This document shows, piece after piece, positions 4,817 through 47,163 of a stretch of DNA of 64,000 nucleotides (its first letter is position 1; the number at the start of each line of letters is the position of its first letter). Under the pieces are notes generated by a model. It was not told the DNA's origin. It saw nothing but the letters and a program-made list of their open reading frames with translations, and searched no databases. The translations under genes and the position numbers were made by a program. The stretch is from positions 1-64,000 of IMG/VR virus record IMGVR_UViG_3300044821_000131, one strand, 5' to 3'.

Positions 4817-6556
4817 ATGAAAAATAGAATACTTCTAGGTGGCGGCGGTTCTGGGGAGGTTGCTATAGACCTTCCGACGCTCATCAAAACCAGGCTTCTA
4901 ATTCAGGCAAACTCCGGAGGAGGAAAGAGTTTTCTTATACGGAGATTGGCTGAACAGCTCTTCGGTACGGTGCCGGTTATCATCATCGACCCCGAAGGTG
5001 AATTCGCCACACTCCGGGAAAAATATGACTACGTCCTGGCGGGTCCTGGTGGTGAAACTCCGGCGGATATACGATCTGCAGGATTGCTGGCGCATAAGTT
5101 GCTTGAGCTGCGAGCTTCCGCAGTGTGCGATTTGTATGAGATGAAGCCTCAAGATCGGCATCAGTGGGTAAAACTTTTCTTGGATTCGTTGATAAATGCA
5201 CCTAAGAAATTGTGGGGCCCAACTGTCGTAATAATTGACGAAGTGCATCAATTTTGTCCAGAGAGCAAAACTGGCGAGAGCGTCGCCAGTGGTTCGGTAG
5301 TAGATTTGGCCACTCGTGGACGCAAGCGTGGCTATTGCAGCATATTCGCCACGCAACGTCTAGGTAAGTTGCGCAAGGACGCGGCGGCAGAGTTGCTGAA
5401 TGTCATGATCGGCATGACGTTCATAGACATTGATCGTGATCGGGCGGTAGATAGTCTGGGCGTTAGTCGGGAGGAAAAGCAGCGCTTCAATAACGAGATC
5501 AAGCTCTTGGAACCCGGTAATTTCTACTGCCTCGGTCGAGCTATCTCCAAGGACCGACTGTTGGTTAAAGTGGGTAGTGTGCTTACTACTCATCCTGAAG
5601 CTGGTGGTAGCAAGTTTACGCTGGTTCCGCCGTCACCAGCGGGTATTAAGGCATTATTGCCCAAGTTGGCAGATTTACCAAAAGCTGTGGAAGAACAGGC
5701 AACCACCGTTGCCGGCTTAAAACAAACTGTAACCGGTTTGCGTCGAGAGATATTGGAATTGAAAAAGGCGAAACCTCCTACTGCAGAACCGTCAAAAGTG
5801 TTGCCGGTTAAATCTGAGTCGGCGCTTTCAGGTAAGGATCGGGCGAGTCTGGCCAAGTTAGGTTCAATAATGGGCCGCGTAGACGGAGCCTGCGAGAAAT
5901 TGACTCAGCTGGGACAGACCCTTAATTCGGAACTCTCCTCTATCAAATCGTCACTGTCGAAAATTTTGTCATCTGACTCGTCTGTTAGAGTACCAACGGT
6001 TAAAACTACGTCGCCGGTTATGGTCAAACCGATGCCCGTCGTGATTCGCGAGGTTTGGAGAGATACGTCCGAGTCAGAAAGTGCTGACTATAAGCCCAGC
6101 AAGTGTCGTCAGAAAATTTTGGGTGTTCTTGCGCAATATCCTGACGGCTGTACGATTGGCAAGATTGCACTCCTGTCGGGGTATCATGTTAGTGGTGGGT
6201 TCAAGAATGAACTGGCTTATCTTCGTACGCACGGACTTATTCTTGGTGGCAACACAGAGCTGATGCGCATTACGAGCTTAGGCTTGGAGAAAGGACCGTT
6301 TGATGCGCTTCCAGTCGGTTCGGACTTTGTTAATTATTGGATGAGTCATTCCAGTTGTAGTTTATGTATGCGTCGTATTATGCAGTCACTTATTGACAAT
6401 CCTGTCGGTCTCGACATATCGAAATTGGCTGAGGCGTCTGGGTATCAGGTCTCTGGCGGATTTAAGAATGAACTGGCACGACTGAGGACGGCCGGACTTC
6501 TGGTTGGTAAGAATACTGGGACGATGACATTAGCCGAGGAGTTTTTCAATGCATAG
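4817..6556 (+). CDS. HerA/FtsK-superfamily ATPase (DUF87/DUF853-like) with two C-terminal winged-helix-like repeats
   Basis: Walker A ANSGGGKS, Walker B VVIIDEVHQF, RGRKRG, ATQRLGKL; coiled coil; duplicated SGYxVSGGFKNELAxLRTxGL. Confidence 0.8.
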   Translation: MKNRILLGGGGSGEVAIDLPTLIKTRLLIQANSGGGKSFLIRRLAEQLFGTVPVIIIDPEGEFATLREKYDYVLAGPGGETPADIRSAGLLAHKLLELRASAVCDLYEMKPQDRHQWVKLFLDSLINAPKKLWGPTVVIIDEVHQFCPESKTGESVASGSVVDLATRGRKRGYCSIFATQRLGKLRKDAAAELLNVMIGMTFIDIDRDRAVDSLGVSREEKQRFNNEIKLLEPGNFYCLGRAISKDRLLVKVGSVLTTHPEAGGSKFTLVPPSPAGIKALLPKLADLPKAVEEQATTVAGLKQTVTGLRREILELKKAKPPTAEPSKVLPVKSESALSGKDRASLAKLGSIMGRVDGACEKLTQLGQTLNSELSSIKSSLSKILSSDSSVRVPTVKTTSPVMVKPMPVVIREVWRDTSESESADYKPSKCRQKILGVLAQYPDGCTIGKIALLSGYHVSGGFKNELAYLRTHGLILGGNTELMRITSLGLEKGPFDALPVGSDFVNYWMSHSSCSLCMRRIMQSLIDNPVGLDISKLAEASGYQVSGGFKNELARLRTAGLLVGKNTGTMTLAEEFFNA

Positions 6557-31903: not shown

Positions 31904-33827
31904 ATGAAGTATTTTGTAAATGGACATTGCTTGAATCCAAAGGCAAACGATGACCTTGTTGTGCCACCGCTCTGTGCGTGCTGCCATAAACCACAGCATA
32001 AATGGAACACCATGCGCGTTCTCGGATGCGGTGGAGATTACGAGGACTGGCCGTGTAGACTGTGCCAGCCAGAAGAATATGAAAAAACTTTACGAGACGC
32101 CTATCTCTAGTCGGCACGATATAAAAGCTGAGCCGCAGCCAACTAATGATAGTCATGAACCAAATGACTCCTGCGGATAAACAGAACGCGCCAATAGAGC
32201 GATTTGATGCTCCACCGGGCTCGGCGGAGCGTGCTGGCCAGAATATGGAACGCGTTTTTAGGTGGTCTAAGGTCTGTGACTGTAAATCCACCGCGTCAAC
32301 GTGTGAAATTCGATGCAAGGGCGAATACGTCAACGCCACATGGACGATGACTGCGACATTTTACCCAATGCTTTCTTGCGATGAATGCGGCGCGACATGG
32401 AAACTCGACGCAGTTAACGTGGGAGTTGACCTACAGTCCCGCCGAAAGAAATAAAAATATGGTATTAACTCAATAGACCAACGACCAATGACACCAAACC
32501 AAGCCAGAGATGGACTGCTCGAAGCCATGCCGCTGACAACGGAAGCGGTAACGACGATAAAGAAATGGGGACGGGAATGCTCTGATGAGCGCAAGGCTGA
32601 CCCTGAAACCTACAATAAATGCCCGCGCTGCTATGGTCTCCACAGCATCCGTGGAAACTTCGACAACCTGTGTGATGGGTGCGTGAAAACAATCCTCGAA
32701 CACTTCCCAAACCATGAAAGCGTGCCGCACATCAAAGCAGCACTCGCTTAGATGTTTAACGTCCGCATGAGTCGCGGTAAATCGTATGGACATCACAAAA
32801 TTAAGCATTAAAGAATGTGCGGAACTTCAATCGCACGAAGGCAATTCCGAACTGGACAGGCGCGTAATGGAAGAACAGGACCGCATCGTTCGACTTTCCA
32901 TTGAGCAACTCACGGCGCTCTTGCTTGCCAGAAGTATTCGGCCAGATAAAACCGACATCAGGCTGAGAGCGGTAAGAGATGAACTCCTCACTCGCTTAGA
33001 TGTTTAACGTCCGCAGAATCCATGCGGCGATTTCAAAATGACATCCAAAATTGCAACTGAACCGTTCAAGCACGGGAACAACCCGCATTGGCTTCATGCG
33101 GTGGTTCGGCGACTGGTTGCATGTCTGCACGTTCACCGCTGGGAAGAAACGCTTTGGAACGCATGGGGCATAGACGTGGAGCAACGCTGCCGCTGCGGTC
33201 AATACCGGCATCACCTGTTTGAGCATCGTCGCGGTTTCTGTCAAGAACCAAACTGGCAACTTGGAAAACATCCCAACCGATACATGGCAAAATGAACACT
33301 GATAATAGTCGAAAATATGAAAACGAAAATAAGATATTCGGATATGAATGGTCGGACATCCAGCGAGCGCAGCAAGGCGGAAGGCTGGCGCAGCCAGTCC
33401 GAACCGGCAACCTAAACGCATCGGTGCAATGCTTCCGATGTCACAAATACTTTCGGCTGCCGCAAACGATGGAAACCGACCCGTGGCCGGTGCAATGCCT
33501 TCACTGCGGCTATATGCACACGTCGCATGACGGAGAATCGGCTATGTGGCCGAAATGGGGCGATGATAACAAATGGCATACAGTGGCCTAACGCCGTGCG
33601 TGAGCCATCCCGGATTCACGACACACAACAATCAAAAACCTGAACGAATAAAGTGCAGCGGCCAACCGGGATTGGCTCGACGCACTTGTTAGGCAGCACG
33701 GTTTATGAAAACAAAACCAATGATAACGGAAACAGTGACACTCTCTTTTGAGGTGAAGCTCAACTACCAAAACGATGAAGGCCGGGCATGGCTCGTAAAA
33801 TCGCTGAAGCGTGATGCTCGGAGATAA
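31904..33827 (+). CDS. Small cassette-like ORFs (31904-32110, 32146-32454, 32488-32751, 32786-33007, 33038-33295, 33292-33591, 33705-33827)
   Basis: Short, often Cys-rich ORFs separated by attC sites or remnants; 33705 read directly (MKTKPMITET...DARR*). Confidence 0.55.
32741..33015 (+). repeat. 27-bp direct repeat cactcgcttagatgtttaacgtccgca (32741-32767, 32989-33015)
   Basis: Exact match; each copy contains an attC core GTTTAAC and they flank ORF 32786-33007. Confidence 0.9.
33002..33110 (-). other. attC site
   Basis: Minus strand: GCCGAAC-CACCG-CAT[G]AAGC-CA[A]TGCGG...CCGCA-TG-GATTCTG-CGGAC-GTTAAAC. Confidence 0.75.
33586..33694 (-). other. attC site (canonical geometry)
   Basis: Minus strand: R'' GCCTAAC, 5 bp, L'' CGT[C]GAGC, CA[A]TCCCGG...CCGGGA-TG, L' GCTCACG, 6 bp, R' GTTAGGC. 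Confidence 0.9.
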
Positions 33828-33934
33828 GGAAATAGGCCGCACAGCCTTTGCTCTGAACCGTCTAAAGGAAATTTTGCCGAACAGTTGATTCTACCAACTT
33901 GGTTGGTTTATTTGCCAGCGCAAATTTAAAAAAC

Positions 33935-33964
33935 TTGCACACCACAACTCGATTCTGATATAAA
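33935..33964 (+). promoter_or_regulatory. Sigma70-like promoter, extended -10
   Basis: TTGCAC-N18-TATAAA with TG at -15/-14, after an A-tract. Confidence 0.55.
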
Positions 33965-34110
33965 TGACAGCATAGATGTCATAGCAGATGTCCTAAGTTC
34001 CACGTGGAATTCTCTTGGCTGGTCCAGATTGTGACATAATCTATGACACCTTTAGCGTTAACTGTCTCGAAGTATGACACTGTTTTGATCGAATTTGATG
34101 CCGGTGTCAT
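33964..34110. repeat. Cluster of TGACA/TGTCA motifs and short palindromes
   Basis: ATGACA-N7-TGTCAT (33964-33982), ttccacgtggaa, agattgtgacataatct, tatgacac twice (34042, 34073), gtgtcat (34104). Confidence 0.6.
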
Positions 34111-34142
34111 TTCCTGAATTTCGGTAACTAGTTGTCTATTAA

Positions 34143-34577
34143 ATGTTTCTTATGGAACAATCTAAGGTCTGTACTGAAAATGCTGCTCGAAATGTCATTA
34201 TTTCTTGCAAATGCGGCGCCGAAGCTCGGGTCGGTCAGCGCACGTGCCTAGAGTGTCATGCCCGACAAGAGCGAAACTATAGACGAGATCGACACTTGTC
34301 TTTGGAGATATGGTCCGTGTACCTGCAGAGTACTGCGTTACACGCCGACCCCGATACCCGGCAGCACTTTGAGGACAGGATCGACACACATCTGGTCGAG
34401 GTCTTGACATCTGGTACTGACCCGTCCTACATTGCCCTGCCGGTAGGTTTTCTTCCGGATGACGTCGTGATCGTGGCCGATCAGTCAGGTCATATCAAAC
34501 AGGTAAAACTGGATCAAATTATCAATTATGGTACGAAACGGAGAACTACAAAAAAATTATCACATCCTGACCGCTAA
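34143..34577 (+). CDS. Hypothetical protein with N-terminal Cys cluster
   Basis: CKCG and CLECH motifs. Confidence 0.55.
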   Translation: MFLMEQSKVCTENAARNVIISCKCGAEARVGQRTCLECHARQERNYRRDRHLSLEIWSVYLQSTALHADPDTRQHFEDRIDTHLVEVLTSGTDPSYIALPVGFLPDDVVIVADQSGHIKQVKLDQIINYGTKRRTTKKLSHPDR

Positions 34578-34881
34578 GGAAGCCTGCTCTCTCGACCCGG
34601 CTCGCTACCGGGTGCCACCACCTGATGCACTGCGTATGTTGCGCCCAGGGCACGTCGTCAAGCTGTTGGTCGATACTGCAAACAATAAAGGCGAAGAGGT
34701 GTGGGTGGCTGTCACCTACCGCCGCAACGCCAACTTCATCGGTATGGTCCATGGCGAGTTGGGCCGGACTCAGCATCACGGGCTGTATAAAGGTTGCGCC
34801 GTGAAGTTTCGAGATCGGAACGTTTTGGACGTTCTGTTTCAGTTGCCGAAAGATACCCCTAAGAGTGTGAGGATCATTTGA
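34528..34881 (+). CDS. DUF2314-like small beta protein
   Basis: VKL...EEVWVAV...FIG...G..VKF...VLDV pattern. Confidence 0.45.
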   Translation: MVRNGELQKNYHILTAKEACSLDPARYRVPPPDALRMLRPGHVVKLLVDTANNKGEEVWVAVTYRRNANFIGMVHGELGRTQHHGLYKGCAVKFRDRNVLDVLFQLPKDTPKSVRII

Positions 34882-35435
34882 TGCAATACAAGATCTGGGT
34901 GGATCTGGACGGGGTGCTGGCCAACTGGCACAAGAGCGCCTGCGAGGTCTTTGGGGTGCCATACCCAACCCGCACCGTGCTGTATCGTGACTGGATAGCC
35001 GAAACTACCAAGTTGCCAATAAATAAGCTGCTTGATCAGACGGACGATGTGCCCAGCTTCTGGAAGGATATGGAGCTTCTGCCGGTGGCGCCGCGGCTCA
35101 TATCCTACTTGGATGTCAATTTCCCCGATTGGCATTTTCTTACACATCCGACTTTGAGTTCGGTGTCATGGGGCGGTAAAGCGGCATGGGTCCGTAAGTA
35201 TTTCGGTAATGACGGCATGCGGCGCTTGGTGATGATGGGTGGTAAAAAGTCCCTGTTCGCAGATCGATATTCCGTTCTGATCGATGATACCCGCAAAATC
35301 ATCGACGAGTGGACCGCGGCCGGCGGCTTGGCATTTCATTGGGTTGAGTATACTTCTGATTGGAAAGAGGCGCATGAGACGCAACTGATACGGCTGATTA
35401 CGTATCTGGATTCGTTGAAAGAAAGCACAAAATAG
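34878..35435 (+). CDS. HAD-family 5'(3')-deoxyribonucleotidase-like protein
   Basis: WVDLDGVLANW, WGGKAAWV, KSL, VLIDD. Confidence 0.8.
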   Translation: MMQYKIWVDLDGVLANWHKSACEVFGVPYPTRTVLYRDWIAETTKLPINKLLDQTDDVPSFWKDMELLPVAPRLISYLDVNFPDWHFLTHPTLSSVSWGGKAAWVRKYFGNDGMRRLVMMGGKKSLFADRYSVLIDDTRKIIDEWTAAGGLAFHWVEYTSDWKEAHETQLIRLITYLDSLKESTK

Positions 35436-35457
35436 TATTTGCACCGGTGGTTTTCTT

Positions 35458-35985
35458 GTGCGATTAATAAGAACCAGTAGTCGGATGAACCGACTAGGTA
35501 TTATTATGAACGAACAAGAAAACAATACATCCAGTAACAACCCCAATCCTCAGTGTCTTCCGGCCAAGCCCGACTTCTCCGCGGTTTACATGGAGGCCTT
35601 ACGGACGTTGGAGGCGGTCATAGCAGCGAACCCGGAGACTCTTAGCAAGGATCTGTCTTCGGCATTGGAAGTCGGTAATGCACTGTTTCAACTGTTGGAG
35701 GCGTTGGCCCTGTACGGCCGGGGTCTTCAATGTAACTTGGACTCACTCGTGGCGCATCTGCCGGACACGGCCTTTCCAGAGGCCGCGTCTTTGAAAGCGT
35801 TGGCTATTCAGCTTCACACGGCATTTCACGAGGAGTCTCGATTTTGCGCCAACATGGAACGCATGGTGCGGGCGCGCATTCTGGAGAGCGCCGGCATCGA
35901 CCCGAATGACAATGACGCGGTTGTCAAATTTTTTACGAACGTCGGCCAAGCCGTAATGATGGCACCGGCCAACAAGGACAATTGA
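35458..35985 (+). CDS. Hypothetical protein (start possibly 35506)
   Basis: Helical ORF between the HAD and MazG-like genes. Confidence 0.55.
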   Translation: MRLIRTSSRMNRLGIIMNEQENNTSSNNPNPQCLPAKPDFSAVYMEALRTLEAVIAANPETLSKDLSSALEVGNALFQLLEALALYGRGLQCNLDSLVAHLPDTAFPEAASLKALAIQLHTAFHEESRFCANMERMVRARILESAGIDPNDNDAVVKFFTNVGQAVMMAPANKDN

Positions 35986-35997
35986 TTTATAAACAAT

Positions 35998-36603
35998 ATG
36001 GAACAAATTGAATATGCAGACATGGTGGCCAAGCTCAGAAAGCCTGGTGACGCCATCGTGAAAGAACTGAACGCCGATGACGCCGATCTGTTGCACATGA
36101 CCATCGGGCTAGTGGGCGAGGCTTCCGGTGAATTGCTCAGGACGTTGTACGCATCGGAAACACCAACTCAAGCGGCCCAAGACATGGAAAATATCATGGA
36201 GGAGCTCGGCGACATCGAATTCTATTTGGAAGGTATTCGCCAGTGTCTGGGCTTGGAGCGATCAACCGAGATCGACATATCCCGGATTCTTAATGTCCCG
36301 ACTGGCACTCTTTACTTGGCCATTATTCTGGCGTTCACGTCCGCAGATCAGCTGTTGGATCACGTGAAGAAAAAAGTGATTTATCGCAAACCCTTGGATA
36401 TGCATCAGATTCGCGAGGCGCTCGCTATGATTGAATTCTGTCTGTTTGGCTTACGCAACAACTTAGGACTTGGACGGGACCACATCTTGCAGTTGAACAT
36501 GGACAAGCTGGCTAAACGGTATCCGGGGTATAGTTACTCCAATGCTTCGGCACAAGCCCGGGCGGATAAGCTGACAGCCGAGGCGCCTGCAACAGGAGGC
36601 TGA
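35998..36603 (+). CDS. MazG-like nucleoside triphosphate pyrophosphohydrolase
   Basis: LHMTIGLVGEASGEL, EELGDIEFY, NMDKLAKRYP. Confidence 0.8.
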   Translation: MEQIEYADMVAKLRKPGDAIVKELNADDADLLHMTIGLVGEASGELLRTLYASETPTQAAQDMENIMEELGDIEFYLEGIRQCLGLERSTEIDISRILNVPTGTLYLAIILAFTSADQLLDHVKKKVIYRKPLDMHQIREALAMIEFCLFGLRNNLGLGRDHILQLNMDKLAKRYPGYSYSNASAQARADKLTAEAPATGG

Positions 36604-36654
36604 TTTGGGTTATAAATAGATGAGCAGGTAGTTTCTTTTAAGTGCTCGGACAGT

Positions 36655-37698
36655 GTGACGACCGGCCGAAGTTTATGGCCGGTCGTTTTCGTTTATATCA
36701 ACAAACCTCGGTTAACTAAAAATCACATGAATAATTCGAAACAAGATGGTTTGGACATTAGCGTAGTCAGTGAAGCGGCGGCTAGTCGTTATGGTGATTA
36801 CCGTTCACGCATGGACAGTTCGAGAATCACCTTCTCCAAGTCGAGCAAGGAGTTGGCAGCCGAACGCTTGGCCTACTTGGGTCAGCTCGAAGTTCCACCC
36901 AGTTCCGTGCCCATGTTTGACTTGGAGCGCACCAGTAACGAAGTGTTGCATCATCTGACGGAACACAACGTCAAGCAATTGCTCATTTCGAGCATGGCCG
37001 TTCTCGGTGTTCTCCGCGGTAATGACCCGCGTACGGTGTTTCGCCTTACCAAGGATATTCGTGTGCCCGATGAGGTCACCCGGCTCCGCAAGGAGAACGA
37101 ACGTCTGTCTGGCGATATCGTCATTGCTCAAGCGACGGCGGTCAACGCCAAGCGGTATTCCGACAAGCTGGAGGCCAAGATCGAGGAACTGGAAGAACAG
37201 CTGGTGGCCAAGCCCGAGGACACGGCAGCCTTCGAGCAGGCACTACAGACCAACATCGAAGCGTCCGACGCTTTCGGCGTGTATGGTGAACCGCTGCTTG
37301 CGCTGTTCGATCAGGTGATCGAGGCTTTGGAATTGAACAAGGAAAATCCGGACTCGGATTTTATTGTCGGTACGCTTCAGCACGTCATGGACGCCATGAG
37401 CAACGTTATTCTGCCTTGGAAGGAACTTGCACGTCCGCTGACAATCCCGGCCGCGGAAGAAGTCCCGCCGGATCTCGCGGAACGTATCGCGTCGGCGGCG
37501 CCCGAAGCCTTGGAAGTGCCGATCGCACCGGCTCCGCCTGTGGCAACCGAAACTCCTGAAGTGTCAGCGCCGGTCGCGGCACCCGAAAATACTACGATGC
37601 CGGAGGCGACGGAAGTTGCCGCGGTATCCGAGCCTCCGGTGGCTGAAACTTCGACCGAAGTGTCGGTTGTGGAGACGCCCTCGGCGGATACGGTTTAA
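36655..37698 (+). CDS. Coiled-coil protein with acidic Pro/Ala/Glu tail (likely start 36727)
   Basis: Heptad-like RLRKENERLSG...KLEAKIEELEEQL; low-complexity C-terminus. Confidence 0.6.
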   Translation: MTTGRSLWPVVFVYINKPRLTKNHMNNSKQDGLDISVVSEAAASRYGDYRSRMDSSRITFSKSSKELAAERLAYLGQLEVPPSSVPMFDLERTSNEVLHHLTEHNVKQLLISSMAVLGVLRGNDPRTVFRLTKDIRVPDEVTRLRKENERLSGDIVIAQATAVNAKRYSDKLEAKIEELEEQLVAKPEDTAAFEQALQTNIEASDAFGVYGEPLLALFDQVIEALELNKENPDSDFIVGTLQHVMDAMSNVILPWKELARPLTIPAAEEVPPDLAERIASAAPEALEVPIAPAPPVATETPEVSAPVAAPENTTMPEATEVAAVSEPPVAETSTEVSVVETPSADTV

Positions 37699-37709
37699 TT
37701 ACTCATCTC

Positions 37710-37752
37710 GACGGGTGGGAACAAGCAATTGTTCTCACCCGTCTTTTCTTTC
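37710..37752 (+). terminator. Intrinsic terminator
   Basis: gacgggtgggaacaa-gcaa-ttgttctcacccgtc followed by ttttctttc. Confidence 0.8.
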
Positions 37753-37781
37753 TTCTTTATTTATCTGAATCATTTCGTACG

Positions 37782-39187
37782 ATGGCAAAACATGACTCAC
37801 ACATTCCGACAATCGCCCTTACCGCTGGATTTCTGGCGGCTCCCGTCGCTGTACCAGTGGCACTGGTAATCTTTGGCGGCTATCTCATTTACTCGATTTT
37901 ACATTGCGGCAAATCAACACATGAAAACGACACTAACTCGGAACGACCTGGTTCTGATACTCCTTAACTCATATCCCCATCACGACTTTGATATTCCATG
38001 GAATTTCGAAAATTCCAAAACTATTACCGTCCCGGTTGGGGATCCGTTGATAACGGCATTGTTGGAATCATTTGCGGGAGTTGCTGGATCAGCTGACTCC
38101 GTCGAAGATATTTTGGGTTCGCTTTATAATGGGTTGAAATCTTGGCAGACAGACTTGAACGACACTTTGAATAATCTGCAGCGCCACGTGATGAATGTTT
38201 GCACGGCGCAGTACGCGGAATTCTTGGTCGAAAACTCGGCCGTTCACACCGAGAATATTTTTCTTTATTGGCATTCTTTTGCGCACAAGGGTTCGGTTTT
38301 TACCAATTTGACGCGGCTGCTGGTGCGTGATAGATATGAGACAGAATACCGGAAGGCTAGTGCGGAGTTATCGCCGACCCAGCATGGAGAGATGGAGCGA
38401 AACAAAAAAGTCTTGGCAAGCCTTCGACAGCAGCTTATGATCAATTTATCTGGTATTCCCGACGGCATCAGTAAAGAGCCTTTGTGGAAGACCGATAAAA
38501 AAGATGCCACCGATCCAGCAACTCCTGTTGACGAAACTAAGCGCCCGGTCGCCTAAGCAACGAGGGTTCTACGCCATGGTGAGGTCCGTTCAAAATGGCG
38601 AGCGCCCACTTCATAGCGTCACAAAATCTGTATCCGATGCGGCGCAGAAGCTGTTGCCGAAAGATGCTTCGCAGGAATCAAATGTTACCTACACCTCGGA
38701 ACCTCAATCGGTGAGTCCACCTGAAGCGTCTCGTAAGATGTCTTGCGCCCAGCGTTTCTTCGTCGCCGATTTTATCCCGAAGTTGGCCAACATCAGCAGC
38801 ATGATTCTTCGATCACACAAGGCTATCCATCAAGCTGGGGCTGCCCGACGTCAAGTGCTGGCCAAGGAGATCGACAAACTCCGTAAGCACAATGAGAAGC
38901 TGCAAACGCAGGCTCAGAAAGCTGAGGAAAAGGCTGTACAGTCTGAGCAGAAGGTTCGAGAGGCTGAGATGCAAGTAGCACAGGCCGGTAAGACGGTCGA
39001 ACAGATTCAGGCCATGCAAATGGCACAAAGAACTCCTCCTCCACCCGAACAGCCGCCGTATGGTAATATGTTGCTTGGTGGTGCGCCTGGTGGCGCTACT
39101 CCTGGCGCTACTCCTGTGCCGCAAGCTACTCCTGCGCCTCCGGCTAATCCCTCCATTCCCGGTATGACGATGGCGCCTGCGGTATAA
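37782..39187 (+). CDS. Hypothetical ORFs (37782-37967, 37921-38556, about 38576-39187)
   Basis: Co-oriented; the last has a coiled coil and Pro/Gly-rich tail. Confidence 0.55.
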
Positions 39188-39230
39188 TCGTCTTTCCTTC
39201 GGTTTTCAAGGTCGTGAACTTTCGTGTCCG

Positions 39231-39259
39231 TTGACTTAATACATATTTTGATTTAAAAA
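39231..39259 (+). promoter_or_regulatory. Sigma70-like promoter upstream of the region leading into attC array 2
   Basis: TTGACT-N17-TAAAAA just before ATG 39263. Confidence 0.55.
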
Positions 39260-39262
39260 TTC

Positions 39263-39787
39263 ATGAAGATACATCTTTTGGTTGGCCAGCGAAAAGAGAG
39301 CTATGCTGGCGAGTTTGCTCCTGAAGTTTTGGAAGCCATAGACGAATTCGGTAATTGCGAAAATGCCGGCGAATGGCTGCAGGGTAAGATGAAGGAGTAC
39401 CGCGTTGACGCTTCTTTTGAAGCACTAGTCATAGTTACATTGGAAGTTCCTACACTTAAAATTTTGGAACGTTTACGTCCGAATAATGAACCTATTGTCG
39501 CCGAGGTGGTAGACACAGATTTATTGACCCTATATCTAAAAGATTCAGACGGTATTTGGAAATCACACAGCTACGAAACGTTATCCGATTTGGCCGGGGA
39601 GTTTGCCAAACGTAACATAAAAATCGGCAATGACGTGAAGATCGGCAATTTCGTGAAGATCGGCAATGACGTGACGATCGGCAATCGCGTGGCGATTGGC
39701 AATGACGTGATGATCGGCAATCGCGTGACGATCATTGATAACACATGTATACCTCCGGAGCTTATCATTCAAAAAAGACTAAGCTGA
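39263..39787 (+). CDS. Chimeric gene: unrelated N-terminus plus hexapeptide module (paralog 3, 6 repeats, no C-terminal domain)
   Basis: LYLKDSDGIWKSHSYETLSDLA block begins mid-gene; 18-bp units at 39620-39727; ends at a broken attC. Confidence 0.75.
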   Translation: MKIHLLVGQRKESYAGEFAPEVLEAIDEFGNCENAGEWLQGKMKEYRVDASFEALVIVTLEVPTLKILERLRPNNEPIVAEVVDTDLLTLYLKDSDGIWKSHSYETLSDLAGEFAKRNIKIGNDVKIGNFVKIGNDVTIGNRVAIGNDVMIGNRVTIIDNTCIPPELIIQKRLS

Positions 39788-39896
39788 GACATCGGCACGG
39801 TCGAGAAATGACGGATACATTTGAAATCGCAACCAAACTAAAATCTATGGCCTATGGAAAGAGTAGTGCCGATTGTTCTCCAACACCGTGTTCGGC
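39781..39896 (-). other. attC site lacking its R' box
   Basis: aagctgagacatcggcac...gtgccgattgttctccaacaccgtGTTCGGC; arms nearly identical to the 42442-42552 site. Confidence 0.75.
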
Positions 39897-40062
39897 GGAG
39901 CCGTCTTGGACGGCCTTCGTCGCGCGAATGAAAAAGGAAGCTCCAACGTTGGTCCCGGATGAAAATGACGACAAGTGGAAAAATTTGCATGCTGTTTATA
40001 TCATGGGCTACGCTGCTTGCCTCGATACCATGAGAGCAGAATTGGACGTACAGATCGACTGA
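39808..40062 (+). CDS. Small ORF starting inside the attC at 39781
   Basis: MTDTFEIATK...DCSPTPCSAEPSW; DCSPTPCS is encoded by the attC arm. Confidence 0.55.
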   Translation: MTDTFEIATKLKSMAYGKSSADCSPTPCSAEPSWTAFVARMKKEAPTLVPDENDDKWKNLHAVYIMGYAACLDTMRAELDVQID

Positions 40063-40064
40063 CT

Positions 40065-40673
40065 ATGACTTTTGCAACCTTTGATACAGCGACCACTGGA
40101 AAGATTAATTGGAAACAGCCGCTGTCTTGGCATGGACAGCCACGTATTGTCTCCACAGGTGCGGTTCTGTTCGACGATGTCGGACGAGAGCTCGCCAGCT
40201 ATTATTCCCTGATCAGACCGGAGGGGTTTCTTATTCCTTCCGATGCCACCAAGGTTCACGGCATCACCACAGAGAAGGCGGAGCAGTATGGAGTCAATTA
40301 CAACATCGCCATGACTTCGGTGATCTCAATGCTCAACTTGGCGGATTATATTCTGATCTTCAATGAAGCGTTCGATCGCAACATGGTTAATATCGAGGCG
40401 TTGATGCGCAGTAATGCGAATGGATACTTGGAGCGTAATCGTTCTCGTATCCGGTGTATGATGCAGGTTATGACCGCGCGTTGTAAGCTAGCTCATCCCT
40501 ACGACACCGGTGACTACAAGGGGCCCAGTTTGGATGAGGCGTGGCAATACACTTTCGGTTTACCACGAGATGTATCTAAAGTGCATAACGCTGGGGTCGA
40601 TGCGCGTGAGACCGGATTGATAGCTTTGGAACTGATACGTAGAAATGACTGGAATATCAACGACGCAACTTAA
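40065..40673 (+). CDS. DEDDh 3'-5' exonuclease-like protein (ExoI Glu replaced by Ala)
   Basis: FDTATTG, FNEAFD, PSLDEA, HNAGVDA. Confidence 0.75.
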   Translation: MTFATFDTATTGKINWKQPLSWHGQPRIVSTGAVLFDDVGRELASYYSLIRPEGFLIPSDATKVHGITTEKAEQYGVNYNIAMTSVISMLNLADYILIFNEAFDRNMVNIEALMRSNANGYLERNRSRIRCMMQVMTARCKLAHPYDTGDYKGPSLDEAWQYTFGLPRDVSKVHNAGVDARETGLIALELIRRNDWNINDAT

Positions 40674-40679
40674 ACACAC

Positions 40680-41162
40680 ATGAAAGAATTACATCCTGAC
40701 GATCCCCGACTTAAGATAAAAATGAATCGATTGGCCAACACCAAGAATCAGCACCAAGGTATACACAAAAAAGTTTTGTGTGTTTGCTCGGCCGGGCTGC
40801 TCCGATCGCCGACACTGGCCTGGGTTTTATCGAATCCTCCATGGAACTGCAACACCCGCGCTTGTGGTGCTGAACCCGAGTACGCATTGATTCCATTAGA
40901 CTTGGCTCTTGTCGAATGGGCTGATGAAATCGTTTGTGCTGAACAGGAGCACGTGGACGCTGCAAAGGCGTTCGTGAAGCATTGCTCGGATGCAGACAAA
41001 CGGATTTTCAATCTGGATCTACCCGATTATCACAGCACGCGCTCTACCAGTCTGGTCCATCTTATTAACGAGCGTTTGGACGCGGTTAAATTTGAAGGTA
41101 CGGTACCGACAGATCTGTCGTCCACTAAGCGTCGGGATTTATCGTCATCGTCAATTGTCTGA
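40680..41162 (+). CDS. Low-molecular-weight protein-tyrosine-phosphatase-like protein
   Basis: N-terminal VLCVCSAGLLRSPT (CX5RS), WADEIVC, LDLPD. Confidence 0.82.
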   Translation: MKELHPDDPRLKIKMNRLANTKNQHQGIHKKVLCVCSAGLLRSPTLAWVLSNPPWNCNTRACGAEPEYALIPLDLALVEWADEIVCAEQEHVDAAKAFVKHCSDADKRIFNLDLPDYHSTRSTSLVHLINERLDAVKFEGTVPTDLSSTKRRDLSSSSIV

Positions 41163-41207
41163 ACTTGGAATGAGGATAATTTTTGGAGCCGACGGCTGCA
41201 ATTCCGT

Positions 41208-43357
41208 ATGAGCAATCCGCGTGATCCCCTTACACCTGAACAAATCAAGCACTGGCGTGACATGCTTGTCGGTATGTTCGGTCCTTGGGCCTTCATAATG
41301 CCAGAGGAGGACATCCAGCGTATGAGGGAGCATTTACAAAGTGATTTGGATTCACATGAAATCAATGACTCAAAAGAATAAACGGAAACGGTTGGTGTGA
41401 CTTGTTATGCCACGAGAACACTCAATGTCGTGCGAATGGCCAGAGGGTTGTAGCTGTGGAGCATCAGCGTGGAATCGATTGGAGCGTGAGCGTGACTGGT
41501 ATCGCTGTCGCGTAAAACTGTTGGAACAGCACAAGTCAATGCTCCGAGAGCCAGAACTAACGCTGGTATGTGATATCATGGCAAACGGCCAACTAATGCC
41601 CGACCCAGACGGGAAACGATATGGGCCTAACGCAGACTTGTCAGGCATATCGATAACAAAACTGACATAAAACATATGACTGAAACTCCACAAACCAAAA
41701 AAACTCTGCTGCCGAAATACGAAGACGGAAGCGGATATAGGATCGAAAGAGAACTGTGTGTCTTCTGCCACAAACCGCTGCTCGACTCATTCCACTTTGC
41801 CAGCGATGACGGTAAGCAACACTGGCACACATACTGCGCAAACAGAAAAGGCGTAACGTCCCGGATGAGCCGCCCGCGATAGGCGACTCACGAACACCAA
41901 AAGATTTATGATCAAAAAGAAAGCGTCAACGCGGGTTGGCTCCATCGGGCGGGTTATGCCTCAGTTGGTGATATGCGACCATCATGGGCATGACTACTGC
42001 GAGGGATGCCAACATAACGAACCCCACAAAGCAAACAGTGAGGACGACGGCGAACTCTGCACATGCGGCGGAGTCTGTGGGGCAAACGGGCCAAACTTCA
42101 ACGTGCGCTGCCTGCGACATAACGCCTCAAGCTGAGGCACGTCGGACTAAAGACTTTATGAAACCTGTGAAACCAAAAATCCGTAGCGATAAAAACAAAC
42201 CGTCCAACCGACGTTGCCTCCGGCGCGGTGTTAGGCGACACGATTGGATAAACGGCCCCGATATGATTCCGAAGCCTGTAAAAAAGGCGATCAAAGAATG
42301 GCGGGCCATCACAAGTCCAATGGAGAAAATCGGATTCATCCTGCACGCTTTCGACCCGACAATACAGTTCCGCTGTCCCGACAGTAACCGAGTGTTTGAT
42401 ATGTCAATAAGTGCCGTCAAACGCATAAATGCCGCCTTGTCGCCTAACGCCTCAAGCTGAGACATCGGCGACCTGCGATGTCCAGCAACCCAAAACCTTA
42501 TGCTCAAAACTGAAAGCGCCAATACCGATTGTTCTCCAGCGCCGGGTTCGGGTGCTGGCTTGGATAACTGAATGGGTCGAAGCAATCTGGAAGGCGTTTC
42601 GACCGCCAAAACGGAAGCGGCTGGAACTGCGGCTCTGCACATGGACTGCCGCAGACAAGCTGATTCGGGAAGGTGGCGGCGCTTGGACGGTAGCCGCCGA
42701 AGATGACCACAACATGGTGCTTGGGTGTGTGTGGTTGGAACGCCTGGAACAATATCCCGACTTCTCGAAGCAGCAGTCGAACGGTGAAGTCAGCGATGGC
42801 GGGACGCTGACTTCCGAATTGAAATCCAAACGCGAACCCGCCATTCGCTGAATTGTTATGGCACTAATACACGAAGAAACTGAACACGAGCTTGGAGCGA
42901 AACTGATGGTATCGGAACGCCAAGAAGGTGAAACCCGCGCCCCGTGGAAAATCATCACGCTCGACGCAGACCGATTCGAGAATCTAACACCAACGGAACT
43001 CCGAAAGCTCGGAAAGTGGCTCATACACCAAGGGAGGCGCATCGGAAGTGAATACAAGTCCAACGGTGCGTTGAAGGCCAAGAGCCATAACGAAAAGCTG
43101 ATCGACAGCGGAAGGAAATTATGAGCTTTAAAAACGGCGGATATAACAACGGGCTTGGTCGGCCAAAGGCGAAGAAGCTGTTCGCTCCGGCGCGTTGTTC
43201 TACGGCGTGGTTGAGCGTGGAATCCCGTTGGCCAGTCAAGGGTGAACTCGAAACCAAAAGATGCCTGACAATCCTAGACGCGGTAATAGAAGGAAAACGC
43301 GCCCTCCAATGTGGGGCGTGGCGCGTAACAATAACTCAGTGCAACGGAGCGCCGTAG
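41208..43357 (+). CDS. Small cassette ORFs (41208-41381, 41407-41670, 41676-41882, 41908-42135, 42158-42460, up to 42429-42851, 42858-43124, 43121-43357)
   Basis: One ORF per inter-attC segment; no function recognised. Confidence 0.6.
41851..41959 (-). other. attC site
   Basis: Plus strand GCGTAAC-gtcccg-gatgagccgcccgcg...cgcggg[t]tggctc[c]atc-gggcgg-GTTATGC. Confidence 0.82.
42117..42236 (-). other. attC site
   Basis: Minus strand GCCTAAC-ACCGC-GCC[G]GAGG-CA[A]CGTCGG...CCGACG-TG-CCTCAGC-TTGAGGC-GTTATGT. Confidence 0.88.
42442..42552 (-). other. attC site
   Basis: Minus strand CCCGAAC-CCGGC-GCT[G]GAGA-ACAATCGG...CCGATG-TCTCAGC-TTGAGGC-GTTAGGC. Confidence 0.85.
42776..42861 (-). other. attC site with a short deletion next to R''
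   Basis: Plus strand GTCGAAC-ggtga-agtcagcgatggcggg...cccgcca[t]tcgctgaatt-GTTATGG. Confidence 0.75.
43085..43203 (-). other. attC site
   Basis: Minus strand GTAGAAC-AACGC-GCC[G]GAGC-GA[A]CAGC...GCTG-TC-GATCAGC-TTTTC-GTTATGG. Confidence 0.82.
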
Positions 43358-43405
43358 AACAGTTAATTAAACCAACGTTGGTCGTTTAACTCATACGAAA
43401 GCCGA

Positions 43406-43434
43406 TTGCCAAACGGGGCCTCAGTAAGTAGTAT
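43406..43434 (+). promoter_or_regulatory. Sigma70-like promoter for the RNAP-fragment genes
   Basis: TTGCCA-N17-TAGTAT, 6 nt before ATG 43441. Confidence 0.6.
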
Positions 43435-43440
43435 TCAAAA

Positions 43441-44985
43441 ATGACCGACGACGTAGCCGCACCCCCGGGAGTGGAAATTACAGCTTGGGATGACTTTCCC
43501 AAGAAACGCCAGCAGATTCTCACTGGCGCTAAAACTGCCCTGCAAGAATCATTTCCCCAATCCTATGGCGGGGTGCGGCTTGAACTACACGACCTCGATT
43601 ACGACAATCCCAAGGAATTCACATTGTCGGAACAGAAGGACGCCCTGATGAAGAACCAGTTTCTCCATCACAAACTCAAGGGTACGTTAAAATTATTCGA
43701 TGAGAAAACCGGTGCGTTGCTGGATCAGAAAACTCAGACGCTCATGCGAGTTCCTTACCTTACCGAGCGTGGTACATTTCTACATAATGGTAACGAGATC
43801 ACCACCAACAGCCAGGCTCGGCTCATGCCGGGCATCTATACGCGGCGTAAGAATTCTGGTGAAATTGAGTCTCAGGTGAACGCCAAGCGTGGATCGGGAT
43901 CATCCTTCCGTGTACGTCTCGAACCCGAGTCCGGTTTGTTTAAGGTCGACATCGGTCAGAGTAGTCTGCGGCTTTATTCGTTGTTGAAAGATATTGGAGT
44001 GTCCGATCAGCAGATTGAGAAGACTTGGGGACCAGAACTGTTGAAGAAGAATCAGGACTCCTACGATGCCAGGGTGTTCGAGAAGGCTTACGATCGATTG
44101 GTGCGGCGTCCCGATCCGAAGGCCACGCGCGAGCAGAAGGTAGAGGCAATCAAGCAGGCTTTGGACAATACGCAGGTGGATCGGTCGGTGGTCATGAGGA
44201 CATTGCCGAATCTGTTCGCCACCAAGTTCTCCTCGATGTTGGCATTCGATCCTACCATGCCTCGGCCGCAGAGCGAGAAGAAGGAATTCAATCACGACGA
44301 TTGCCTGATGCTGGCGGAGCTGTTGAATCAGAAGTTTCATGCTGGCATTCCGTTGGATGCCCCGACCTCAGAGATCGTAGCCATGGTGATGGGTGAAATA
44401 CAGAAGCTCATGCCGTCGGTGAATGAGCAGATGCTGGCACAGACTGTAGGGCAACAGCAGAAAGAGGCGCGATCGAAACAAGGTTATCTGATGTTGAATT
44501 TCGAACCGGAAGACGCCATGAGGTTTTCCAAGTGGTCAAGGCAGAATATCCCGGATTCGAAACTGGGTGCGTCCGGACGTGAAGACACCCCGCATATCAC
44601 TTTGCGTTGGGGTATCAACACGGGTGATATTGGGCACCTGAAATCATTCTTCTCAGAACAGTCCCCAGTCCAAGCCACGCTCGGCGCTCTGACTCGATTT
44701 CCTGGCGTCGACGACGGAAACCAAGATGCACTAGTGGCGCCGGTAGAGTCCGAATCCATTCACAAGCTACACCATGCTGTCGTATCGACGTTTCATTCTC
44801 ATCTCGGACCCGTCAAGTTCAATACCTACCGGCCACATGTTACTCTAGCCTATTTAAGGCGTGGCGAGATGCCGGAATTGGAAGGTAACAAGGAGTTTCA
44901 TGGCCAGACATTCCAGTTGAAGAAGGTGGTGTATTCCAATCCTCGCACCAGCTCGTATATTGACATTCCGCTGGGTACAAATTAG
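43441..44985 (+). CDS. RNA polymerase beta subunit N-terminal fragment fused to a 2H phosphoesterase domain
   Basis: VPYLTERGTFLHNGNEITTNSQARLMPG matches RpoB IPLMTxxGTFIINGxERVVVSQLxRSPG; C-terminal PHITL (44593) and PHVTL (44836). Confidence 0.82.
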   Translation: MTDDVAAPPGVEITAWDDFPKKRQQILTGAKTALQESFPQSYGGVRLELHDLDYDNPKEFTLSEQKDALMKNQFLHHKLKGTLKLFDEKTGALLDQKTQTLMRVPYLTERGTFLHNGNEITTNSQARLMPGIYTRRKNSGEIESQVNAKRGSGSSFRVRLEPESGLFKVDIGQSSLRLYSLLKDIGVSDQQIEKTWGPELLKKNQDSYDARVFEKAYDRLVRRPDPKATREQKVEAIKQALDNTQVDRSVVMRTLPNLFATKFSSMLAFDPTMPRPQSEKKEFNHDDCLMLAELLNQKFHAGIPLDAPTSEIVAMVMGEIQKLMPSVNEQMLAQTVGQQQKEARSKQGYLMLNFEPEDAMRFSKWSRQNIPDSKLGASGREDTPHITLRWGINTGDIGHLKSFFSEQSPVQATLGALTRFPGVDDGNQDALVAPVESESIHKLHHAVVSTFHSHLGPVKFNTYRPHVTLAYLRRGEMPELEGNKEFHGQTFQLKKVVYSNPRTSSYIDIPLGTN

Positions 44986-44994
44986 TATTCGGGC

Positions 44995-45711
44995 ATGCCT
45001 AGTCATAGCAAAGCGCAGCAACGGGCGTTCGGAATGGCCGCCGCTCTCCAAGAAGGTAAACTTTCTCCCAGCAAGGTGTCTCCCAGTGTACGCCGCATTG
45101 CCCGGGATGTATCTCATACGGATGTGCGTCATTTCGCCACTACCAAGCACACTGGCCTTCCTGAGCATGTTGCCAAGCACGCTTCATATCTGAAGCCAAT
45201 GACGGCCGGCACGGCTGTAGGGGATTTTGGCAGACTTGAAGGCAACCCCAATACTTGGAACATGCCGATGCCGCGCTATAACCAAGCTCCTCCAGCGTGG
45301 GCACCCGCGGAGAAGCCCCTGACATTCATGAGCAGTGTCGGGCAGATGGGCAAAGGCTTATATCGTATGGGTATGGGTGGTGCATCCGCGGCTACGATTG
45401 GTCAAAATGGATCTCCTGGCGTGTTGGAGAACACGTTGGGCAATGCCGTACATGGAGTTGGCGATGTATGGTCGGGACAGGGCGCGTGGGGAAAAGTGCC
45501 TGGGTACATCCGGAAGCCTCTGGCACCGATTGCCGGGCCTTGGTATGGTGCTATGAACACCCCCGGGCAGTTCAGTGGTCCCTACGGCAGGTTCTTGGAC
45601 AACTCCGGTCAGGATCGTGCCATGGCTGCTGCTCCTTATACGTGGGCACAGCATAGTTGGCGCGATATGGTGAATGGCTGGAATCAATTCATGAACAATA
45701 AAATGCAGTAA
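44995..45711 (+). CDS. DUF3008-like N-terminus plus Gly/Met/Trp-rich C-terminus
   Basis: MPSHSKAQQRAFGMAAA...VRHFATTKHTGLPEHV resembles the DUF3008 pattern MPAKSKAQQ...FASTKxKGLP. Confidence 0.55.
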   Translation: MPSHSKAQQRAFGMAAALQEGKLSPSKVSPSVRRIARDVSHTDVRHFATTKHTGLPEHVAKHASYLKPMTAGTAVGDFGRLEGNPNTWNMPMPRYNQAPPAWAPAEKPLTFMSSVGQMGKGLYRMGMGGASAATIGQNGSPGVLENTLGNAVHGVGDVWSGQGAWGKVPGYIRKPLAPIAGPWYGAMNTPGQFSGPYGRFLDNSGQDRAMAAAPYTWAQHSWRDMVNGWNQFMNNKMQ

Positions 45712-47163
45712 ATGCTCACTTACGAAAAGATTTTCGCGCAGGCTAAAAAAGCTTTCGTCGAATCCAAATCTGCTACTGCCGAACCGGCTCAGCCCACAGA
45801 GGATACCGTTCCGGTCAATCCTGACGCGATCTTGGCTATCACCAGCAAGTTGTTAGCTGTGACTAGAGGTGAGGCGGATCCGGACGAACGTGATAGCCTT
45901 CAATTTAAAAGAGTTCACACTCCCGATAAACTGTTCGCCGAACGCATTAAGATGGATGCCCATAAACTGCGTAAGATCGCGATGCGTCGCGTTTCGCGTG
46001 TCCGCAATCTATCACCTATCGGTGTGGCGCATTTCGATCCTTACACGGGAGGATTGATCGTTGGGCATCCGTTATCCAGTCCTTTGGAAGAGACGAACCC
46101 GTTATCGCTTACGGAGCAGGCGAGACGCGTGACGCAGATGGGACCTGGTGGTATTCCTTCCTCGGATTCGATCACGGAAGAGGCACAATCTGTGTCTCCT
46201 TCGATATTCGGTTTCTTGTCAGCGATCGAAGGGCCGGAATGCTTTTCAGATGACACAGAGGTGTTCACTTATAACGGGTGGAAGTTTTGGAGTAGCATTA
46301 CAAATTCGGATCGTCTGGCCTGTCGTGATGAACACGGGCAAATGTTTTTCTCGGCCCCTAGTCGCCTAATAGCTGCACCTTATACTGGACCTATGGTCCA
46401 AGCTGACGCTCGGATGTTTCATTTAAAGGTTACGCCGAATCACAGGTTACTTGTCGCTAAGCACATGAGAAAATCACAAGTTCCCACGACTTGGTTTAAA
46501 ATTTTTGCCGGTGATTTTTCTGATCATAATGTTTTGCGATTCGACACCGGCAGCCTTCCATATTCTGGAAATTCTGTTTTAACATGGTCTCTACCCGATT
46601 ATGCTCTTGATAAGTTCATTCCGGAATACTTGTTCGATGCACCAATTTCTGCCCGACAGAAGTTGTTTGAAGCCCTACTTTTGGGAGATGGTCGGATTAA
46701 CAAAAACCACACCAATTTTACCAGCAGCAGCAAACAATTGGCTACTGATTTTGAACGTTTGGCCGTAGGCTTAGGACACACCACCAATTTTAGAAAATAT
46801 TTCGACAAGCGACCCCATGTACAAGCTTGGACTTATGAGATTAGTATTTTGAAGTTGCGCGAGCGCGTGGCGGCTAGAAAACCCAAGTCTGGTGTTGGCG
46901 GGCTGTTTTCGATAGTCGATTATTCTGGTATTGTGTATTGTGCCACGGTTCCCGGCGGCCTGTTGCTGACTCGACGTGGCGTATCTACCGGTGTATGGTC
47001 AGGCAATAGTGAACGCATCGGTGTAGATACGCGTCTCGCTTGGGGCGCTAACGTTGGCTCAGACGGAAAAATTTATCAGAAACTCTTGAATCGCAGGACT
47101 GGTCAGCATCAGTATGTGTCACCGGACGATCTCGTCGGTCGCACGGTTGGTATCCCTGAATAG
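45712..47163 (+). CDS. RNA polymerase beta subunit middle fragment, intein-containing
   Basis: DERDSLQFKRV (cf DDIDHLGNRR), LEETNPLSLTEQARRVTQMGPGGI (cf [24 protein letters not shown]), FGFLSAIEGPE-SERIG (cf YGRICPIETPEGPNIG). Confidence 0.88.
   Translation: MLTYEKIFAQAKKAFVESKSATAEPAQPTEDTVPVNPDAILAITSKLLAVTRGEADPDERDSLQFKRVHTPDKLFAERIKMDAHKLRKIAMRRVSRVRNLSPIGVAHFDPYTGGLIVGHPLSSPLEETNPLSLTEQARRVTQMGPGGIPSSDSITEEAQSVSPSIFGFLSAIEGPECFSDDTEVFTYNGWKFWSSITNSDRLACRDEHGQMFFSAPSRLIAAPYTGPMVQADARMFHLKVTPNHRLLVAKHMRKSQVPTTWFKIFAGDFSDHNVLRFDTGSLPYSGNSVLTWSLPDYALDKFIPEYLFDAPISARQKLFEALLLGDGRINKNHTNFTSSSKQLATDFERLAVGLGHTTNFRKYFDKRPHVQAWTYEISILKLRERVAARKPKSGVGGLFSIVDYSGIVYCATVPGGLLLTRRGVSTGVWSGNSERIGVDTRLAWGANVGSDGKIYQKLLNRRTGQHQYVSPDDLVGRTVGIPE
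46240..47007 (+). mobile_element. Intein (256 aa) with partly deleted LAGLIDADG domain
   Basis: Starts CFSDDTEV, VTPNHRL, only one ALLLGDG motif, ends VYCATVPGGLLLTRRG...WSGN, +1 Ser. Confidence 0.88.

Follow-up and report, generated by a model that had tools for sequence, protein, structure and literature searches.

Integrons are known as bacterial gene-capture platforms. Here we describe a conserved motif that closes two arrays of attC sites in a phage genome and that is very probably an attI, i.e., the double-stranded primary recombination site, of an integron family carried on environmental phage contigs. The DNA analysed (the window) is a stretch of 64,000 nt, the first 64 kb of a 204,257-bp IMG/VR virus record (IMGVR_UViG_3300044821_000131) that has direct terminal repeats and is rated complete. 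The phage DNA comes from a peat metagenome and encodes jumbo-phage genes, namely DNA polymerase, terminase, helicase and split RNA-polymerase beta fragments.

Several described systems bear comparison with these arrays. Sedentary chromosomal integrons are alike in having attCs of a single polarity that are 86-120 nt long and mutually related within a family. A 17-nt attC arm is common to the phage and to bacterial metagenome-assembled genomes (MAGs; L007, L008, L020 and L031 in our numbering of loci); in L007, L020 and L031, however, the cassette genes lie opposite that arm's strand, whereas in the phage they lie on the same strand. The promoter early stem-loop elements (PeSLs) of T4-type phages also resemble the phage arrays, with small accessory genes placed between repeated hairpin elements in hyperplastic regions. 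PeSLs are thought to be shuffled by homologous recombination, and to our knowledge have no dedicated recombinase, attC geometry or attI.

The attI1 site of class 1 integrons (AB571791.1, locus L104) is like the motif in lying between intI and the first cassette, with the integrase gene reading away from it. The attI1 crossover is also at G|TT (GGCTAA|C on the intI strand), and its R box is likewise followed by an inverted GTT element and then by further direct ..AAC repeats. The two systems differ in spacing and gene orientation: the distance from the crossover to the intI1 start is about 140 nt in the class 1 example and 36 nt in the phage family, and the class 1 cassette gene, dfrA12, lies on the strand opposite to intI1 (divergent), whereas the phage cassette genes are co-directional with intI and have a stop codon supplied by attI. 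The two attI copies in the phage window, unlike attI1, have no adjacent intI.

For phages, Qi et al. (2023; PMC9892861) reported attC clusters without integrase (CALINs) in virulent phages, and a few integrons in phages that were mostly temperate; phage reports so far consist mainly of attC clusters and a few borrowed bacterial integrons. Inverted GTTRRRY-like motifs border the phage CALINs and were discussed there as possible sites of illegitimate recombination or as terminators. Like the CALINs, the arrays described here are attC arrays in a lytic phage genome that has no intI. The difference is that no conserved attI has been defined for the CALINs of virulent phages, whereas the motif at the array borders described here is conserved over 38 bp and directly adjoins intI in related phage contigs. 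In the literature searched beyond PMC9892861 we found no conserved phage attI and no description of this integrase group.

The motif, GAACAGTTRATTnnACCAAC(0-3 nt)GTTGG, is present in two copies on the + strand, at 33879 (End 1) and 43357 (End 2), each closing an attC array on the right. The shared block at 33879-33910 is 78% identical to that at 43357-43388 across 32 nt. A search of the window with 3 mismatches allowed returned exactly these two sites (0 expected, from 100 shuffles), and no sites beyond these two appeared in the whole genome of 204,257 bp when 5 substitutions were allowed. The copy at End 1 (33880..33910, +) reads AACAGTTGATTCTACCAAC-TTG-GTTGG, then TTTATT, and fits the full 27-nt pattern of the 47 other loci described below, including the 3-nt spacer; its predicted crossover lies between 33881 and 33882, AA|C on the + strand and G|TT on the minus strand. 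The copy at End 2 (43358..43388, +), 58 nt upstream of an RNA polymerase beta-fragment gene (43441), reads AACAGTTAATTAAACCAAC-GTTGG and has no 3-nt spacer; its crossover is predicted between 43359 and 43360. End 1 is intact, and End 2 may be decayed and possibly non-functional through loss of the spacer.

The possibility that both arrays end in an attI-like entry site had been raised in an earlier note on this DNA, which considered phage-borne primary insertion sites and, alternatively, truncated short attCs. The strings on which the note relied are borne out: the minus strand at 33876-33898 is GTTGGTAGAATCAACTG/TTCGGC and that at 43354-43376 is GTTGGTTTAATTAACTG/TTCTAC, each followed by ACCAAC..GTTGGT. 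The accaac/gttggt hairpin that it saw beside each site holds as letters but is weak as a structure, the DNA fold z-score being -2.2 at End 1 and 0.0 at End 2. The motif is conserved in sequence, not in structure.

These folding results bear on two other explanations. The first is that the sites are truncated or unusually short attCs. The motif does open with an R-box-like ..GAAC and contains AAC and GTT triplets, and at End 2 AGTTAA can pair with TTAACT; the fold at that end is nonetheless no better than that of shuffled sequences, and End 1 has no outer stem. As an attC candidate the motif was rejected, since it is not the expected palindrome, has no complementary arms and no outer stem common to the two ends, and finds no match to our attC covariance model at E values up to 5. 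In addition, it is located between array and intI, and its sequence is conserved while attCs vary. We therefore regard a short attC as very improbable. The second explanation is an intrinsic terminator, or RNA hairpin, closing the cassette operon. Both sites do lie at the 3′ end of co-directional small open reading frames (ORFs), and a minimal terminator scan accepts End 1 on the basis of a 6-bp stem and the TTATTTG after it. The scan does not call End 2, however, and a stable stem is found at neither site; the consensus amounts to a 5-bp stem with a free 3-nt loop and no T run, whereas the terminator-like sites at 36657 and 37710 have G+C-rich stems of 12-15 bp. We consider this explanation very improbable.

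Searching with the motif pattern and a spacer of 0-3 nt, we found 41 metagenome loci and 6 IMG/VR viral contigs, all of which have a 3-nt spacer. The consensus of the 34 unique contexts is AACAGTTAATTCAACCAAC-NNN-GTTGGCAttatca. Conservation is also seen at bases that the pattern left free, namely 'CA' at the two N positions and CAttatca after GTTGG, and the left flank carries ~0.14 bits per position except for a GCCY before AAC, which completes an RYYYAAC box. In all, ~38 nt are conserved across 49 copies, whereas the attCs of those loci vary freely. attC cassettes are found left of the motif on the same strand, with the first cassette's attC at its distal end. The attC model gave 67 hits in 42 related loci, of which 58 are upstream of the motif and on its strand; five of the remaining hits lie downstream and are part of further arrays, and four belong to a separate inverted array of L048. 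Several contigs besides that of the window thus have more than one array: L058 has attCs downstream of the motif, and L056 and L072 are one 45.5-kb contig (ERZ869921.130) with two motif copies.

In 12 loci the sequence on the right-hand side of the motif matches IntI, beginning 9-14 nt from the motif's end; the protein is full length in five of these and a remnant in four (L053, L061, L062 and L078). Complete integrons are present in L046, L049, L060, L066 and L070. All five full-length proteins cover positions 2-315 of the TIGR02249 model and score 246-281 bits; the cut-off is 265, which three of them reach and two do not. The motif-linked integrases are 37-40% identical to IntI1; the catalytic residues R146, K171, H277, R280, H303 and Y312 are invariant, as is the IntI-specific extra segment (L212-F233 of IntI1). 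Their identity to any integrase in GenBank phage records is at most 40%. No such motif lies upstream of the intI genes of two bacterial MAGs with related attC arms, G001 (behind L007) and G003 (behind L020).

The contigs that carry the motif encode phage genes wherever their length permits judgement, and their genes are densely packed and co-directional. A large terminase is encoded on L062 and L054, a head or pilot protein on L070 and a sliding clamp on L043; the L072 contig encodes a virion protein and an exonuclease, and NUDIX-carrying proteins occur on L054 and L065. Apart from L071, no motif contig shares proteins with the phage described here (E 1e-5), and the system thus spans different phage lineages.

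We also considered that the motif might be mainly the promoter or translation-start region of the right-hand gene (Pint in complete elements), with its position at array ends being secondary. The start of a gene is found 4-14 nt beyond GTTGGCAttatca in many loci, whichever gene that is, and attI1 of class 1 occupies the interval from the cassettes to the start of intI1, in which an intI promoter would be expected. A promoter role and an attI role are not mutually exclusive. However, the motif is not called by a sigma-70-type scan, End 1 is 230 nt from the next gene, and a promoter would leave unexplained the sharp AA|C boundary, the RYYYAAC junction and the complementarity between junction and attC described below. 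A mainly promoter function is improbable. The gap after End 1 (33926-34143, 230 nt) has a promoter-like TTGCAC-18-TATAAA, which was spotted by eye and is not called by the scan, as well as at least six TGACA/TGTCAT words, and it is a possible operator region for the downstream gene block.

Evidence for cassette insertion is seen at the boundary of the conserved region. Across the 34 unique loci, similarity ends exactly at the predicted crossover AA|C. Positions -4 to -1 are G, C, C and Y in 24, 20, 24 and 24 of the 34 loci, at least three of the four RYYY positions fit in 26, and the cassette side of the G|TT crossover is variable and largely conforms to TTRRRY. The boundary is also apparent when related loci are compared: identity to the right and left of the motif is 98% (200 nt) and 23% for L063/L077, 99% and 25% for L063/L065, 95% and 28% for the intI-linked pair L055/L066, and 88% and 23% for L052/L074. 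The identical run left of AAC in the compared pairs is 0-2 nt, and identity on that side is at the random level (23-34%) in pairs of loci that agree at 95-100% on the right. L063, L065 and L077 have near-identical backbones without intI and three different first cassettes.

The junctions also have the form expected of inserted cassettes. When the 8 nt immediately left of AAC are compared with the nearest attC, they match the reverse complement of its outer box at 7-8 of 8 positions in 15 of 23 loci. Cognate pairs average 5.5 of 8 and non-cognate pairs 2.9, a value as high as the cognate mean being reached in 0 of 10,000 permutations (p<1e-4). Such complementarity is the signature of a circular cassette that was opened at its own attC and then joined to attI. 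At End 2 the match is 8/8, and the ends of the first cassette are complementary across 11 nt (43197-43207 and 43350-43360).

For the phage itself, the closest relative found is L071, whose beta N-terminus is 70% identical, compared to about 50% in other relatives; a search for close relatives with the beta-fragment protein found none, the GenBank phages matching distantly. L071 has an intact motif 64 nt upstream of its beta gene (58 nt at End 2) and a different first cassette. The check proposed in the earlier note, a search of related phages for the motif at array ends with different cassettes next to it, is therefore positive, both for L071 and for the near-identical backbones.

The polarity of the arrays points in the same direction. 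In every good attC the extra unpaired bases are in the 3′ arm of the + strand, and the distance of the extrahelical T from the 3′ end is 21-23 nt for attCs A, B and C, 16 nt for attC E and 22 nt in the bottom strand of a canonical attC. In bacterial attCs that share the 17-nt arm TAACGCCTCAAGCTGAG, the cassette genes are on the other strand (L007, L020 and L031), and in the related phage loci intI lies right of the motif, which is an independent confirmation. It follows from these three features that the + strand corresponds to the bottom strand of the attCs and that the attI side is on the right, so that the earlier argument from polarity holds. The last attC ends 185 nt left of the motif at End 1 and 154 nt at End 2, as expected for an attI at the array end. 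When bacterial genomes were scanned for the arm TAACGCCTCAAGCTGAG, there were 38 single matches, which is about the number expected by chance, and real attCs were present only in L007, L008, L020 and L031; L007, L020 and L031 were used for polarity and not as evidence of a host.

A number of observations weigh against the identification of the motif as attI. Conservation inside the pattern is partly circular, because the search fixed 22 of its 27 bases. There is no sequence similarity between the motif and attI1, although attI sites of different integron classes are not expected to resemble each other. The junction at End 1 matches its attC at only 5 of 8 positions, and the only ORF in the cassette next to it has 40 codons (33705-33827). 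End 2 lacks the 3-nt spacer that is present in 47 of 47 other copies. No tyrosine recombinase candidate was obtained with the PF00589 profile across the 204-kb genome, and tblastn with an integron integrase returned only noise there, such that the phage has no intI: the same motif adjoins intI in 12 loci elsewhere and at neither window copy, and the window has attI and cassettes with no complete integron. Finally, contigs from public runs revealed no alternative cassette joints, which, being contigs only, are evidence neither way, and no recombination was observed. Against these points stand the identity of the motif to sites that abut intI, the polarity, the crossover boundary, the closed cassettes and the cassette turnover, and on balance an attI-like primary insertion site is well supported.

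How would such a site function? Complete members of the family have, on one strand, a cassette array, then attI (about 38 bp), then intI beginning 36 nt past the crossover. With strand exchange at G|TT (AA|C on the + strand), new cassettes would enter between the array and the conserved AGTTRATT..CCAAC-NNN-GTTGG. The conserved part has core-like elements, AAC-A-GTTAATT, two direct ..CAAC repeats and an inverted GTTGGCA, which by analogy may correspond to the L, R and DR boxes of attI1; AGTTAAT, CAACCAAC and GTTGGCA are putative sub-elements for integrase contact. The cassette genes are carried on the attC bottom strand and read toward attI along with the other phage genes. In the phage described here, two attI copies head short arrays with no intI, which makes them orphan landing pads. 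Such orphan sites, including the two copies in this phage, may be relics, or they may be served in trans by an integrase from the host, a prophage or a co-infecting phage; at End 2, the missing spacer could impair the reaction.

The possibility of relics deserves consideration. Under this explanation a phage with intI was the source of the arrays and attI, which came as one block by inheritance or acquisition; intI then disappeared and recombination ceased. The lack of intI anywhere in the 204-kb genome, the 3-nt deletion unique to End 2 and the decayed attCs that make up much of array 1 would all be accounted for. In addition, intI remnants adjoin the motif in L053, L061, L062 and L078, which shows that loss occurs in phage contigs and marks out a path from complete integron to orphan attI. 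In L061 (7331 nt) the decayed intI beside the motif is followed by three more attCs and a second, different tyrosine recombinase of 328 aa that is 34% identical to IntI. On the other hand, nothing is missing from End 1, and at End 2 the two ends of the first cassette retain full complementarity. L071 and this phage, both of which lack intI upstream of the beta gene, differ in their first cassette, implying cassette turnover that followed intI loss or did not depend on it; the three first cassettes on the intI-less backbones of L063, L065 and L077 argue likewise. We consider relics less likely than not, although the explanation is plausible, especially for End 2.

A further property of the family is the direction of its cassette genes, which run toward attI and continue into intI. 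Two results settled the coding strand, namely the reading frames that are closed at the attI stop codon and the protein-like translations. In 23 of the 34 unique loci, the frame closed by the TAA or TGA of attI (AAC-AGT-TRA) has 60 or more open codons, and in five more loci the frame ending at the TAA of the junction box is equally long, compared to a control rate of 16-20% of stop codons. In the phage arrays, the + strand translates into ordinary small proteins, of which several have paired CxxC motifs, whereas minus-strand translations are not protein-like. Two other approaches gave no strand decision: a codon-usage model based on the long genes of the phage was negative for both array strands, and a contest of the longest contained ORFs ended at 25 vs 16.

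Cassette genes often start within the loop of their own attC. At 42158-42236 in the window and at 5160-5270 (-) in L070, the start codon is in the attC loop and the first 15-25 residues come from the 3′ arm. Because the attC is shared, two otherwise unrelated cassette proteins (of the attC at 42117 and of L070) have the peptide MKPK.RS..KPSNR in common. The conserved arm of the next attC can also provide the stop of the preceding gene (AAC GCC TCA AGC TGA), as at 42117-42135 and 42442-42460, which parallels the AAC AGT TRA of attI at the array end. Among 15 array ORFs tested against Pfam and PHROGs, 12 had no significant family.

The attCs of the window were located with a covariance model (R1) trained on six phage and 25 metagenomic sites, which is mostly a sequence model because the RNAalifold consensus of the attC alignment gave only 6 pairs. 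Across the 204-kb genome the model identifies eight attCs, all on the + strand and all in the two arrays except for a weak, isolated one at 39787-39896. A strict RYYYAAC...GTTRRRY scan found one attC only, and energy-based scans produced spurious hits outside the arrays. Of the two extrahelical bases, a canonical attC has G nearer the R box and T as the second; in the attCs of the window and of L044-L083, the former is usually C and sometimes A or G, within ..CTG-C-AGC.., and the second is T.

In array 1, the attI-proximal cassette has attC A (33586..33694, +; 79.8 bits), with a hairpin of -25 kcal/mol, boxes GCCTAAC / GTTAGGC and an extrahelical T and G in the 3′ arm. The first cassette (33592..33881, +) is thus made up of attC A and 185 nt of content, and would end at crossovers GCCTAA|C and GCCGAA|C. 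Upstream of it is attC H (33002..33110, +; 32.7 bits), the arms of which are 84-85% identical to an attC of L071 and the loop of which contains the start of ORF 33038-33295. The older part of the array (31904..33001, +) consists of small ORFs (31904-32110, 32146-32454, 32488-32751 and 32786-33007) separated by decayed attC remnants (about 32115-32232) that the model misses. A 27-nt perfect direct repeat, at 32741-32767 and 32989-33015, spans an ORF end, its TAG and a GTTTAAC box; of the two copies, only the second (32989) runs on into a foldable attC (33002-33110).

Array 2 has attCs B (41851..41959, +; 63.3 bits), C (42117..42236, +; 74.4 bits), D (42442..42552, +; 68.7 bits) and E (42776..42861, +; 42.9 bits), followed by the attI-proximal attC I (43085..43203, +; 29.6 bits, E 8e-4), which was outside the training set of the model. 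The arms and loop of attC C nearly match an attC that lies beside attI and intI in L070. The first cassette (43091..43359, +) contains ORF 43121-43357 (78 aa), which begins in the attC loop and stops at a TAG immediately before AAC. The region of array 2 (40674..43440, +) is absent between the exonuclease and beta genes of three relatives. Since in those relatives the exonuclease gene (here 39975-40673) abuts the beta-fragment gene (here 43441), these 2.8 kb are an insertion. The relatives L001-L004 (~50% protein identity) have no array or motif between the two genes.

The isolated site, attC F (39787..39896, +; 16.5 bits, E 0.36), is decayed and lies within an ordinary gene block. Starting 46 nt after it, at 39943-39954 and inside ORF 39745-40062, is CCAACGTTGGTC, a spacer-less 12-mer identical to the End 2 core. 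The spacer-less form is absent from the 47 other motif copies, and a scan of IMG/VR viral contigs restricted to it gave no match. This 12-mer may be the relic of a third attI or a gene-conversion product.

Some features of the neighbouring genes can be mentioned here. ORF 39263-39787 has six tandem 18-nt units (39605-39748) in which the hexapeptide IGN-D/R-V-x is encoded repeatedly. Across 43441-47163, the RNA polymerase beta subunit is encoded in separate fragments. The N-terminal fragment (43441-44985) is fused to a 2H phosphoesterase domain (PF13563), in place of which relatives have NUDIX or other domains, and the product of 45712-47163 matches Rpb2 domain 3 and, weakly, LAGLIDADG. Contigs of 151-295 nt from a rhizosphere metagenome of another study, of low depth, have 0-1 differences from the phage across 41114-44600, and the same metagenome has one 56-nt contig of higher depth that matches the attI motif alone.

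Finally, the properties of the motif and its neighbours are consistent with a distinct integron family on phage contigs, having its own attI, its own integrases, a compact platform and cassette genes that are turned so as to follow phage transcription; attI copies without intI are frequent in this family. A broader proposal, about which our doubts slightly outweigh our confidence, is that lytic phages of the environment, including jumbo phages, operate their own integron system. This would consist of a phage IntI clade, the 38-bp attI and a common pool of small-gene cassettes, with genes on the attC bottom strand that are read with one-way phage transcription, and many phages would keep only the attI and depend on a trans integrase during co-infection. 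The conserved attI offers a primer site beside variable cassettes, and metagenomes of peat, soil and freshwater could thereby be mined for the phage cassette pool or used for its amplification. Counter-defence genes are obvious candidates for cassette content, although no function was found here. If the sites are active, lytic phages would gain site-specific swapping of small accessory genes, and if the integrase is indeed supplied in trans, cassette exchange would be a communal, phage-to-phage process.

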